From: Styela clava
Taxonomy: Eukaryota
DNA: 64,000 bases
Direction: 5' to 3'
Assembly (NCBI RefSeq): GCF_964204865.1
Contig: NC_135251.1
Span: 12,152,001 to 12,216,000 of the forward strand
Shown here: piece after piece, positions 46,997 to 53,679 of the stretch
Numbering within the stretch: position 1 is the stretch's first letter
Layout of the letters: each line of letters begins with the position of its first letter
Made by a program: the position numbers and the translations under genes
Notes under the pieces: generated by a model
Database searches by the model: none
The model's input: only the letters and a program-made list of their open reading frames with translations
What the model was told of the DNA's origin: nothing

Positions 46997-49900
46997 ATGA
47001 CAGCGATGAAACAGGAATCCGGTTTCCGGACAACTGGATGGGTGGTGATTGGATATCTGATGATGATATCTGGAACGACCACAAATCCGGTTGAAGCTAG
47101 TGACCACGTAGCTGGAAGACATTTTTTCGGTGGATCCATGACAATGAAAGCCAGCGAAAATTACAGAAAAACGAATCGTGAAGTAAGTATATTATTCCAT
47201 TTTTTTGCTTCTAACGCAACATAACACAAAACAACATTATTTTGAGGTTTTAGCAACACAATGATAATCATCAGACGGAAATAACCAATTGAAAAATGGT
47301 CTATTTCAAAATCTAATCAGCAATTTTATCTGTATTTATAAATCATCTCGATAGAGCCGTTGACAAAAATAATTACTTACCCATGCGTTCAATTTGTAAA
47401 TTATATAAATTAAGCCCAATAATCTGTTTGTGAAATTAGATCCACTTTCGATTGCACGATTTCAACACGAGTTCAATTTCAGATGATATTTGAATTTCAA
47501 GTCGGGTGGCAACGAACGACCGACACTTGCAATGCAGATTCCATATTGAATGATTTGGAAGTGGAATTTGATGGTAAATGGGAGAAAAATCCACCTTGCA
47601 CCACTGATTGCGATTTGGGTCATAAAAGTAAGTATTACGTTCTTGGGATGTCGTGTCATCAGCGAAACCGGTACTTTTGGTTTATACGGCTGAAGATTGT
47701 AGCAAATTCGGGTTCGATAAAAAAGAGAACTACTGGTTCCTAAAATCGAATACCATATCTGCTTCTGAACGTTTTGTGCCATTTTCATACTGTTCCAATA
47801 CTCACATTGAATTACGCAATACGCACGTATGTATACGTCGGTAGCTGGCGACTACTGCTACATCTGACGTTTCAAAGTTTGGTATTAGGTTCATTTATGT
47901 AAAGCAGGGGTAGGCAAACTTTTGTCGTTCGCGGGCCAAAATTAAATGTTGCAAGTCATTGGTGGGCCGCACATACTTTTAGAAAGGTAAAAACCGAAGG
48001 AATGGCCAATGAATAACAATTTGAACCTGTTTTTAATGAGCTCGACACAAAAGAGAACCAGTTCATGTAAATTTTGAATCCAGCCTCCGGCTCACTTAGT
48101 ATTCTAAGACAGTATGTTCGGGTGGTTTTGCGATCATCATTTGTGGTCGGTCACACAATTTGTATTTCTTACCTTCATCCGGGACTGTGAACGCATATGT
48201 TCCATCGCAACTTTAATCATGAGCACGACCGTGCTAGATGTTGATTATCTAACTGTAGTATGTTCCAACTGATAAATGCATACTACTGTAACAGCGAGTG
48301 TGTCCGCATGTATATGTGAGACACGAAACTCAACGCCAAACCCTGACGCCGAAACGAGGCAGTCGGTATTAAGCGGAAGTTTCGTTCTAAAACGCGACGC
48401 CGAGCAAAATTGCAAAGCCTGAATCGTCCAATTATTGAGAATTCCCAACCTCCGCGTTTAAATATTCATGATTTCGGGATTAGTTTATTTTTACTGTTGC
48501 GGACGAGATGAACCTGGAATATTTTCGGTATACGCAACCTTTCGACTATGCATCTTAGGTACATTCTGGCAACGTGACTTACATAAGGAATATCCCCTAA
48601 TAGCCACGCTATAGCAAGGTCATCGTTACGTTACGCTCGGCGTCGCGCCTGGAAAAAAAAATTTCTGGCGAATATGGAAGTTCGAGTTCGGCGATAATGT
48701 TTTGCGTCAGATTAGTTGTTACTTATCGATCTTTAGATCGGTAATTACTTATTGATTTTTAGATTGGTAAGCCATGGTATCCAATTACCATTTGTAGCTA
48801 ATATTATATCGTTCATGAGGGGTTTTAGGTAACTTTTGCGTATATTCTAGGTTTTAGTGTTGCATTTGTACCCATTGACAACTTCAGAAGTTATATTTTT
48901 ACTAAATTTTATGACAGAGTTAACCTGCAGTGAATATGATGATTCAAATATCAATCCAAAGTTGAATTGGAATTTTGGGAGCAATATTTTCACGCACGTT
49001 TTTGAATCCAAAGGATTACACAACATAAGGTACGTGAAGTCGTGAGTCTCGTCTTGAAAAGCTAATGCACATAAACAAGAATCCATAATACTGGTCAAGA
49101 CAATTTTTTGCGGAACCGGTATTAGGCTGCAACCAAACAACTGCACTTGGTTCAGGATACGTTACCTCAGGTCATCATGACTCAAAGATTCTCTCTGGCG
49201 GCGAGTCACAATCATGCTAAAGTTAACCAAGCTCAAAAATATTTAATATTAAAATCAATGTTTAGATAAAAATAATGACCATGTGTCCCAGATACAATTT
49301 ATTTGGGAAATAATTGCTGCGCTTTCATCTGATTTTTATCCATTTGAAGTTGATAAATACTTTTTGTAATCTTTTCTTTTCAGTGTAAGAGGATGTTGTT
49401 GGCATGGTACGGATGATAGTTGGATGATGACAATACAAGCAAATGTCGGAATACGTTCAGACACAGGAGTTCCAAATTCATCACCAGCTACTTCAGCTAT
49501 GCCTGTTGTTGAGTGAGTTTATTTTATATTTGGCTGGAATAAAACGGAATGGTTTTCACAGAATTAAAAATAGTTTATTCGAGTATGACAAAGTTTTACA
49601 ATATTGTTACAAGGTCTAAAGTCTTTTTCCATTTTATATACTCTAGAAATATTTGGAAACTATGGAATAAAAGATGAAGCAAAAAAATAAGATATTAAAC
49701 GATATAAAAATATAAAATTCATCTTTGCCAAAGTAGTTGTCGAATTTTTAGTTCTCAGTATGACGTAGTTTTTCAATCAAAAAGCAGTTTAGATTATAAT
49801 CTAGTATATTCCATGTCGGTTGTTGATAAAGTCTATTTCAGACGAGACTAGTTTTGATAAAAAAAAAACTAATAACTTTCCGATGCAATAAAATTTTGAA

Positions 49901-52900: not shown

Positions 52901-53679
52901 AAAAACTCAATCAGATCTCGCACGGCAATTGTTTTTTCAACAAGCAATTAATCACATTCACCTATGGCTCCTAAAGAGCAAAAATAATTGCGATATTGTG
53001 TCAAAAAAGCTGTTGAACAAAGAACACATATTACACCACACTGTAAAAGTGTTGATTACCAATGGTTAATCGTGTTGCGCAATCTGTGACGTCAGTCTCG
53101 TTTCTTTTTAGCTACACCTCGTATACTCAATCTGATACATAACTTTTAAAACTTCTTATGAAACACTAGCTGCCAGCTGCAATGCACGTAACCCATTTTC
53201 TGCGTTCCTCTGACGTTAAGGGGCTCACTGATTATCACGACAATCCAAGAATGTCGGGCATACCCCCTGAATCTCATGACTATCGGAAACTAAAACATTA
53301 TTCCCCACTATAAATCATTTTTTCCGATTCCAGCATTGACAACCTGTTTGTTGTCGGCCCTACTGGATTTTCCAAAACGAAGCTTAAAACTGACGTACAA
53401 AAGAAAGTATACTACAGCATTGTCAGATGGACGCCTACTGTCATGCATGCAGGAATGAATATGTTTTGTGTGGTTGCAAGGGACGACAGAGGGTAAGATT
53501 TATTTCTCAATTTTTTATATACCGATTCTAGAGCTTTCTATCATATTTGGTTATCGTCAAAAATAAAATGGCCGTACGTTTTTTTAGTTCTCTTGCAAGT
53601 ATACTTTATTTTACGCTTTTTTGTTTTGTTTGCAGAGTATATTCGTATGAAAGATGTTTTACAGTCTATGTTCCAGTAG
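46997..53679 (+). CDS. Gene 2 exons 1-9: N-terminal head (HFxGG / GCCW / RSDTG-NSSP / DxDGD / WTP motifs)
   Basis: HFFGGSMT; VGWQR; CSEYDD...WNFG; VRGCCW; [19 protein letters not shown]; [15 protein letters not shown]; [13 protein letters not shown]...PFQFLV; RWTP...[10 protein letters not shown]...ERCFTVYV. The reading frame is solid; the family assignment is from recalled motifs, not a search. Confidence 0.75.

Follow-up and report, generated by a model that had tools for sequence, protein, structure and literature searches.

Gene model of the locus

The window, i.e. the whole stretch of DNA that was analysed, comprises 64,000 nucleotides of the Styela clava genome (NC_135251.1, positions 12,152,001 to 12,216,000), and all coordinates given below refer to it. 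Nine exons lie on its + strand between 46997 and 53679. Together, they make up 1189 nt or ~396 codons starting from the ATG at 46997, with all introns being GT-AG and phase-compatible, which agrees with the nine exons and about 395 aa proposed in a first-pass annotation of this DNA. According to splice phase and Pfam matches, these head exons read in frame into a VWD-C8-TIL-TILa-VWD array. The features are as follows, with the matches of the head exons to a profile HMM of 59 animal heads:

46997-47182, + strand: exon A, starting at the frame's first ATG, with a hydrophobic signal-peptide core at residues 14-26 and the His-Phe-Phe-Gly-Gly start of the head; donor GTAAGT, phase 0; HMM 2-19, 3.9 bits, weak
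47483-47627, + strand: exon B, part of the first beta-sandwich domain, with the GWQR motif; phase 0 at the acceptor, phase 1 at the donor (GTAAGT); HMM 18-69, 10.3 bits
48918-49029, + strand: exon C, CSEY..W.FG motif, first domain; HMM 68-100, 4.8 bits; an alternative donor at 49041 (+ strand) leaves the phase unchanged
49384-49512, + strand: exon D, GCCW and a further motif of 11 protein letters, end of domain 1 with the most conserved linker motif; HMM 96-146, 44.3 bits, E 1.7e-13
50085-50202, + strand: exon E, a motif of 12 protein letters, start of domain 2; weak donor (GTATAA); HMM 147-175, 11.5 bits
50635-50797, + strand: exon F, G.Y..L.LED..P.QFLV motif, domain 2; HMM 194-246, 37.8 bits, E 1.6e-11
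51403-51535, + strand: exon X, start of domain 3; phase 1 in, phase 2 out; fills the HMM gap 247-290
53334-53492, + strand: exon G, WTP...FCVVA.D motif, Ig-like domain 3; HMM 291-346, 31.6 bits, E 1.2e-9
53636-53679, + strand: exon H, a motif of 10 protein letters, last strand of domain 3; donor GTGAGT, phase 1
54127-54266, + strand: first VWD exon, with a phase-1 acceptor that fits exon H; Pfam VWD E 2.2e-9; donor not fixed
54844-62969, + strand: rest of the VWD, C8, TIL, TILa and second VWD; all 8 downstream open segments match VWD/C8/TIL/TILa

Exons A, B, C, D, E, F and G (7/9) matched the head HMM collinearly, and because of this collinear match the observation exceeds what chance would give. 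Exons X and H gave no score alone (with the head HMM in both cases, and with Pfam for exon X); splice phase, together with their location with respect to the homologues, determined their placement. All eight motif groups were found in the open segments from 46997 to 53679 on the + strand in the order that had been claimed, and the observation of an ordered nine-exon head fused to a VWD array was thereby confirmed. Exon D, in particular, matched 178 of 184 homologous proteins by blastp. When the motifs were compared with the invariant columns of the family, the W, R.D, N..P, D.D.D and C residues were all present in the window head, which has Lys at the position following Cys where the family has a nearly invariant Arg. 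Judged by these matches, the window head is a member of the animal Sib-type head family, collinear over all three domains. Exon E does not carry the two-cysteine EC...C loop of the family consensus, and no extra exon with this loop was found between exons E and F. A strong donor at 50152 was considered for exon E and rejected, as it would remove both conserved cysteines. In the paralogue L006, exons C and D form a single open frame. No second head was found in the window, both strands having been searched.

Downstream of the head, the array comprises VWD (54127-55901), C8 (57417-57818), TIL (58462-59263), TILa (59658-59828) and again VWD (61014-62969), each module reaching at least the Pfam cut-off in at least one segment. 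The phase 1 of exon H is that of the acceptor at 54127, making the head-to-VWD junction compatible. In both module order and repetition, the array is of the VWD-C8-TIL repeat kind (FCGBP / gel-forming mucin), and the gene extends past the window end. A separate VWD gene sits just upstream of the head gene, and unspliced read-through beyond exon H meets a stop after two codons. RNA runs contained 5-7% of the words; in four of them, compared with 48850-54350, no contig was found on any exon, and contigs appeared only on one bin (50874-51057) and on an intronic repeat (51978-53265).

The head in other animals and its fusion to VWD arrays

A total of 152 representatives of the head family were retrieved at E<=1e-3. 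The head was located at the N-terminus, right behind the signal peptide, in at least eight animal phyla, its carriers including sponges, cnidarians, rotifers, molluscs, a crustacean, crinoids, amphioxus, tunicates, lampreys, fishes and a frog. The animal family, which had been described as patchily distributed, is therefore broad instead. Polymer-forming tails of many unrelated kinds, among them ZP and VWD, follow the head, which was also found in adhesion GPCRs, in Sushi/SRCR/EGF proteins and in an RHS protein. Metagenome homologues were evaluated as bacterial members and rejected: they begin at an internal Met within the head, they carry Ig domains and 0/10 match NCBIfam, so that they were taken as animal genes with a missed first exon. 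In a protein atlas, only rotifer clusters were found, plus a weak lead to a Bacteroidota cluster (score 0.84). For this module of ~360 residues, no solved structure was found among family members, and no described function was found in literature searches.

The fusion observed in the window has counterparts. In Ciona intestinalis (P0265), six VWD, six C8 and six TIL modules follow the head, the first VWD domain beginning within ~10 residues of the last head strand, and PF24907 is matched at residues 75-198 (E 0.0017). A lamprey protein (P0009) consists of the head, three VWD-C8-TIL-TILa units and a ZP-C module. Moreover, a second gene of the Styela genome (C2:20.06-20.08 Mb) has the head directly followed by VWD. 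The earlier statement that no fusion of such a head to VWD arrays had been described held for the literature, in which no paper was found on PF24907, on animal proteins with the head or on the VWD fusion, but not for public annotation, where the fusion proteins of Ciona and lampreys are present under the name 'IgGFc-binding protein-like'.

Likeness to Sib proteins and to Bacteroidota surface proteins

The proposed likeness to the Dictyostelium Sib proteins was borne out by PF24907, 'Integrin beta-like protein A-E, N-terminal' (SIBA-E_N), a model named for the N-terminus of SibA-E. At E<=0.01, it was matched by 23 of 99 homologues, with a best match of E 5.2e-9 among these 99 members, and 3 of 8 scanned homologues were above its curated cut-off of 28.1 bits. 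Furthermore, several family members are named 'integrin beta-like protein A/B/C' by NCBI. The Sib link is thus drawn from the Pfam model and from database names. Searches with the lamprey and Ciona heads did not reach Sib sequences, Pfam searches with the single head exons of the window gave no match at E<=10, and PF24907 run against the Styela genome matched nothing within the window.

The likeness to bacterial surface proteins that had been suspected from the motif order was found in Bacteroidota type IX-secreted proteins, whose mature N-terminus carries these motifs in the same order. Membership of the Bacteroidota head family was assessed for the animal family as a whole. When the animal family profile was aligned to that of the Bacteroidota heads by hhalign, the whole head matched over 322 columns (97.3%, E 1.6e-11), compared with E 0.2-0.5 for reversed and shuffled controls. 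The match was kept without the first 15 residues (97.0%, E 1.2e-10) and with domains 2-3 alone (95%, E 3.8e-8); domain 1 alone matched the bacterial heads weakly (local E 0.002, global E 8e-5). Further along these bacterial proteins, at residues 360-740, no likeness to the head was seen (E 0.4). On these profile comparisons, the animal family matches the Bacteroidota head family beyond generic Ig repeats. The links from HMM to single sequences were weak: at E<=10, hits were obtained for 2 of 120 bacterial ORFs, and a threshold of E<=0.01 was reached by 5 of 184 animal proteins. The window exons gave no match above noise with the bacterial HMM. PF24907 matched 0 of 6 scanned Bacteroidota head proteins. 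The head was found in 24 of 301 sampled Bacteroidota genomes.

Predicted fold and the free N-terminus

A cadherin/Ig-like fold had been anticipated, and the AlphaFold model of a mussel member agrees with it, consisting of three consecutive beta-sandwich domains in an all-beta structure with pLDDT above 93 for residues 21-370. Domain 3 resembled adhesin and Ig modules with Z values of 9-9.7, in particular SraP (9.7) and GspB (9.0), and cadherin-23 with a Z of 8.3, while the best Z for the bacterial domain 1 was 8.4. The fold searches returned generic beta-sandwich matches only (Ig/PKD/FnIII-like) and nothing specific.

The window head lies at the extreme N-terminus of its gene product, with the first ATG, a hydrophobic core and the His at residue 42, seven residues beyond the most ordinary cleavage site. 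In 77 animal homologues with a Met start and the motif, this His was found at residues 18-42 (median 22), and it was preceded by Ser/Thr in 63 of them, as it was in all 99 bacterial ORFs that had a Met start upstream. In the predicted mature protein, the His is kept as the second residue in animals and bacteria. In the window head, Arg precedes the His, and the point of cleavage is uncertain. From this conservation, we infer that the free N-terminus, [Ser/Thr]-His-x-Arg-x-Gly, is part of a binding face; blocking or extending it is predicted to abolish function.

Interpretation of the locus

Taken together, the gene model and the homologies suggest that the locus is probably the 5′ portion of a tunicate gene whose product is a secreted polymer of the FCGBP / gel-forming-mucin kind, in which the head would form a distal ligand-binding or adhesive tip with putative Ca2+ sites. 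A signal peptide and a head of ~360 residues, spliced from nine exons, would be followed in frame by the VWD-C8-TIL repeats. The head would occupy the free distal end of this polymer and is a putative ligand-binding or adhesive module. Its acidic motifs (the R.D.G..N.SP linker, D.DGD and ED) are predicted to form cadherin-like Ca2+ sites that would stiffen the junction between domains 1 and 2. The first-pass annotation had read the head as a Ca2+-binding, cadherin/Ig-like adhesion module, possibly of old horizontal origin, recruited into a mucus protein. This interpretation is supported in part, namely in the Sib and bacterial likenesses, the cadherin/Ig-like fold and the lack of a match to IgGFc_binding, NIDO or AMOP in the head; Ca2+ binding, adhesion, a role in mucus and an old horizontal origin are putative.

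A more far-reaching form of the same idea, which we consider rather unlikely, is that the head would be a recognition module of ancient origin, shared across kingdoms, that works through its free N-terminus. Once the signal peptide is cleaved, the strand [Ser/Thr]-His-x-Arg-x-Gly would build a putative metal- or ligand-binding pocket with invariant Arg, Asp and Asn residues of the linker and with the D.DGD loop, and this pocket would have been retained in Bacteroidota surface proteins, in amoeba Sib receptors and in the mucus, ZP and receptor proteins of animals. Mounted on a VWD polymer in tunicates and lampreys, the head would then yield a mucus for the capture of a defined target, for example a microbe or a glycan of food particles.

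As an alternative, of comparably low probability, the head could be an assembly or spacer module that packs, dimerises or spaces the VWD polymer with no external ligand, a role that the N-terminal regions of other VWD proteins have. The generic Ig/PKD/FnIII-like folds of its three domains and its position ahead of many unrelated polymer-forming tails (ZP, VWD) would suit such a role; however, the head is also carried by non-polymer proteins (adhesion GPCRs, Sushi/SRCR/EGF proteins, an RHS protein) and by surface proteins of bacteria and amoebae, and a strict free N-terminus across kingdoms is better suited to a binding face. It is very unlikely that the head exons and the VWD array belong to two genes, or that the head is an unexpressed relic, with no fusion protein being made from the locus. 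The absence of RNA contigs from all exons in the four runs, the VWD gene immediately upstream and the stop two codons past the unspliced exon H, which makes a head-only product conceivable, are compatible with that view, but all junctions are in phase, including that from exon H to the VWD exon, the invariant residues of the family are intact, and the head is directly followed by VWD both in Ciona P0265 and in the paralogue at C2:20.07 Mb. Finally, a metal centre or enzyme-like module built on a free X-His N-terminus, with a loose resemblance to the copper sites known from other secreted beta-sandwich proteins, is highly improbable: although the second-residue His is kept in animals and bacteria and invariant Arg, Asp and Asn are nearby in sequence, the His is at position 2 rather than 1, no structural match to copper-site proteins stood out, pLDDT is below 50 for the three N-terminal residues of the bacterial model, and the window has Arg ahead of His with an uncertain cleavage site.

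Under the preferred reading of the head as the adhesive tip of a secreted polymer, its place on the VWD polymers of tunicates and lampreys would make it a candidate source of mucus binding specificity in a filter-feeder or a jawless fish. More generally, a head of ~360 residues tops very different extracellular proteins of animals, the adhesion receptors of amoebae and the surface proteins of Bacteroidota, and the head family offers a handle on what Sib receptors bind.

Comparison with known systems

Like the window head, the module named for the Sib proteins lies at the extreme N-terminus, where it forms a beta-rich extracellular part of an adhesion receptor. PF24907, which matches residues ~25-170 of the animal homologues of the window head, spans only the first of the three head domains. 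According to the cited sources, Sib proteins are adhesion receptors of Dictyostelium (PMC3279395, PMC9197732) in which the N-terminus is followed by a VWA domain, a membrane span and a talin-binding tail (PMC3279395, PMC9197732, PMC12686525). In the Styela gene, VWD-C8-TIL repeats follow the head.

The Bacteroidota proteins are likewise headed by a collinear three-domain module at the mature N-terminus, with the Thr-His-x-Arg-x-Gly start, the N-[SN]-[ST]-P linker and the D-x-D-G-D motif as in animal heads, and these proteins of ~865-930 aa are located at the cell surface. However, their heads are devoid of CCW-type cysteines, and fn3-like parts and a type IX secretion type B sorting domain (CHU_C / TIGR04131) follow instead. 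Cadherin repeats and the cadherin-like or Ig-like modules of the Gram-positive adhesins SraP and GspB resemble the head in their tandem beta-sandwiches and in the acidic motifs near domain junctions, but no sequence match links cadherin families to the head and, at the Z values seen, the match with these proteins may reflect a mere common fold.

Among secreted mucus proteins with a non-VWD head ahead of VWD modules, human-type FCGBP has an IgGFc_binding N-terminal domain and the MUC4/SUSD2 type has the order NIDO-AMOP-VWD. None of IgGFc_binding, NIDO and AMOP was matched by Pfam in the head exons, nor in the heads of P0009 and P0265. The proteins of Ciona (P0265) and lampreys (P0009, P0261-P0264) differ from the window gene in detail: the Ciona head has ~30-38% identity to that of the window over three alignable exon-sized pieces, the EC...C loop is missing from the window head, and the lamprey proteins end with a ZP-C module and that of Ciona with an FXa-type EGF, the end of the Styela gene being outside the window. 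They share with it, nonetheless, the arrangement of signal peptide, head and, directly thereafter, VWD-C8-TIL(-TILa) modules.

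Gene model and neighbourhood of the head

The motifs listed by the first-pass annotation were all present on the + strand, with their order kept, in open segments between positions 46997 and 53679 of the window, the DNA of which is AT-rich, animal and free of assembly gaps. Its nine-exon head was recovered as nine in-phase exons summing to 1,189 nt, with GT-AG borders and matching phases at every junction.

Exons of the head in the window, from splice-site and phase analysis
46997-47182, + strand, exon A
47483-47627, + strand, exon B
48918-49029, + strand, exon C
49384-49512, + strand, exon D
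50085-50202, + strand, exon E
50635-50797, + strand, exon F
51403-51535, + strand, exon X (from splice phase; without a motif of its own)
53334-53492, + strand, exon G
53636-53679, + strand, exon H

Exon X was located from the mismatch between the phase 1 exit of exon F and the phase 2 entry of exon G. The open frame of exon A has its first ATG at 46997, and a hydrophobic core follows. Exon H exits in phase 1, the phase of the acceptor at 54127 that opens a VWD exon. Beyond it, on the + strand, the rest of this VWD was followed by C8, TIL, TILa and a second VWD, such domain matches being found in all eight downstream segments scanned. The window head was searched exon by exon, and an HMM of 59 non-redundant heads gave collinear matches on the window exons, with E-values of 1e-13 to 1e-9 for exons D, F and G. 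No second head was found in the window. The identity of the feature is well supported.

Upstream on the + strand (27200-45270) lies a separate VWD-array gene, which has VWD, C8 and TIL exons and, at ~43513-43740, one that is EGF/FXa-like. The final exon had a Mucin2_WxxW match (45033-45269) and a stop at 45270, followed by poly(A)-like signals, and no Sib-type head was seen before this gene within the window.

The candidate RNA runs contained 5-7% of the sampled words. Four runs mapped on 48850-54350 covered no exon, from which neither expression nor silence follows, and their coverage was limited to a single bin within an intron and to a foldback repeat (~52.0-53.3 kb). This foldback element (52135-53125), which lies within the intron that separates exons X and G, was abundant in the contigs of all four runs. 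Its two arms of 302 nt, at 52135-52436 and 52824-53125, are inverted, 97% complementary and separated by a 387 nt spacer. The short intronic stretch 50874-51057, just 3′ of exon F, is probably another small repeat; contigs of the RNA runs cover it and continue into unlike sequence, with loose ends at 51013 and 51048.

Family and fold of the head

In one of the Styela clava paralogues, exons C and D are fused in a single open frame of 88 residues, which was used as query against 1.84 billion representatives. A total of 152 proteins matched at E≤1e-3, most of them at residues ~85-175, which indicates an N-terminal module. Animal members came from corals, an anemone, sponges, rotifers, bivalves, a shrimp and crinoids, as well as from amphioxus, Ciona, Styela clava, lampreys, several fishes and a frog. 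The likeness to Dictyostelium Sib proteins, previously proposed, was borne out: the most matched Pfam family was PF24907 ('Integrin beta-like protein A-E, N-terminal'), found in 23 of 99 homologues (best E 5.2e-9) and always at residues ~25-170, and several members bear the NCBI name 'integrin beta-like protein A/B/C'.

The cadherin/Ig-like fold suggested earlier agrees with the AlphaFold model of P0029, a mussel member (mean pLDDT 86; above 93 for residues 21-370), which is all-beta, with three sandwiches in succession. Domain 3 matched adhesin and Ig modules (Z 9-9.7), and domains 1 and 2 together matched one chain (Z 8.6). In this model the most conserved motif, R.D.G..N.SP, sits in the coil joining domains 1 and 2, and D.DGD is placed at the start of domain 2. 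No solved structure related by sequence was found.

Bacterial relatives and the N-terminus

An N-terminal motif of Bacteroidota proteins was back-translated and used as query. It retrieved at least 120 loci, compared with about 2 expected by our own estimate, nearly all of the listed titles being Bacteroidota or close allies. Of the 301 genomes sampled from the phylum, 24 contained the bacterial head query. Full-length ORFs had ~865-930 residues. Thr-His-x-Arg-x-Gly directly follows their signal peptide, then come an N-[SN]-[ST]-P linker and D.DGD, and all six ORFs scanned had a CHU_C/type B sorting domain at the C-terminus. One MAG record labelled Comamonadaceae (L033/G002) also carries a Bacteroidota-type gene; its label or binning looks wrong, since its phylum sample comprises exactly the genomes listed for a Bacteroidales MAG.

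When the profile of 59 animal heads was compared with that of 88 bacterial N-termini, they aligned from the first residue over 322 columns (97.3%, E 1.6e-11). Removal of the first 15 residues, by which the bacterial set had been selected, left 97.0% and E 1.2e-10. E was 0.2-0.46 for the reversed and shuffled controls and 0.4 for later residues of the bacterial proteins. The bacterial likeness claimed in the first-pass annotation held for the whole head and for domains 2-3 alone (E 3.8e-8). Against it count domain 1 alone (E 0.002 local, 8e-5 global), the small number of HMM-to-sequence matches between animals and bacteria, and PF24907, matched by none of the six bacterial proteins scanned. The bacterial domain 1 model was a generic Ig/PKD-like sandwich (best Z 8.4).

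In the 77 animal proteins that had both the motif and a Met start, the His fell at residue 18-42; 63 of them had Ser/Thr immediately before it, and 68 had Ala, Gly or Ser two positions before it. Of 99 bacterial ORFs, all had Thr/Ser immediately before the His and 89 had Ala two positions before it. These patterns fit a predicted cleavage site that leaves a single residue ahead of the His in animals and bacteria alike. Gly-Arg-His of the window matches the pattern, but its His is residue 42.

PMC3279395 and PMC9197732 describe the Sib receptors of Dictyostelium as acting in adhesion. The putative function of the head is inferred from this role, its tip position in extracellular proteins, its cadherin-like motifs and the location of its bacterial relatives at the cell surface.

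Paralogues and comparison with other architectures

Head paralogues were found at 20.06-20.08 Mb of Styela clava contig C2 and at four places on contig C8. On C2 (20060001-20080000, minus strand; L011, L016), a second gene carries the same head directly before VWD-C8-TIL exons, and this paralogue, at 20.07 Mb, is closer to the Ciona intestinalis protein P0265 (up to 84% identity in pieces). Those on C8 lie at 19.21-19.31 Mb (L013-L015, L018-L020) and 11.48 Mb (L012, L017); three are clustered and have NAW in place of CCW, one of them matching the annotated Styela clava protein P0059. Beside the C8 paralogues, the stretches examined showed no VWD exons.

The same head also precedes ZP modules, Sushi/SRCR/EGF arrays, adhesion GPCRs and an RHS/CARDB protein. 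P0268 (Nematostella) and P0119 are very long proteins with the head at the N-terminus and CARDB repeats, the former also having RHS repeats.

No described fusion of the head to VWD arrays had been known to the first-pass annotation, and a literature search found no paper on the head domain or on this fusion. The fusion is not unique to the window locus, as it occurs in the C2 paralogue, in lampreys and in Ciona. The lamprey 'IgGFc-binding protein-like' proteins continue after the head with three VWD-C8-TIL-TILa units and then ZP-C. In Ciona P0265 the head is joined to six units and, as in the window, VWD begins within ~10 residues of the last head strand.
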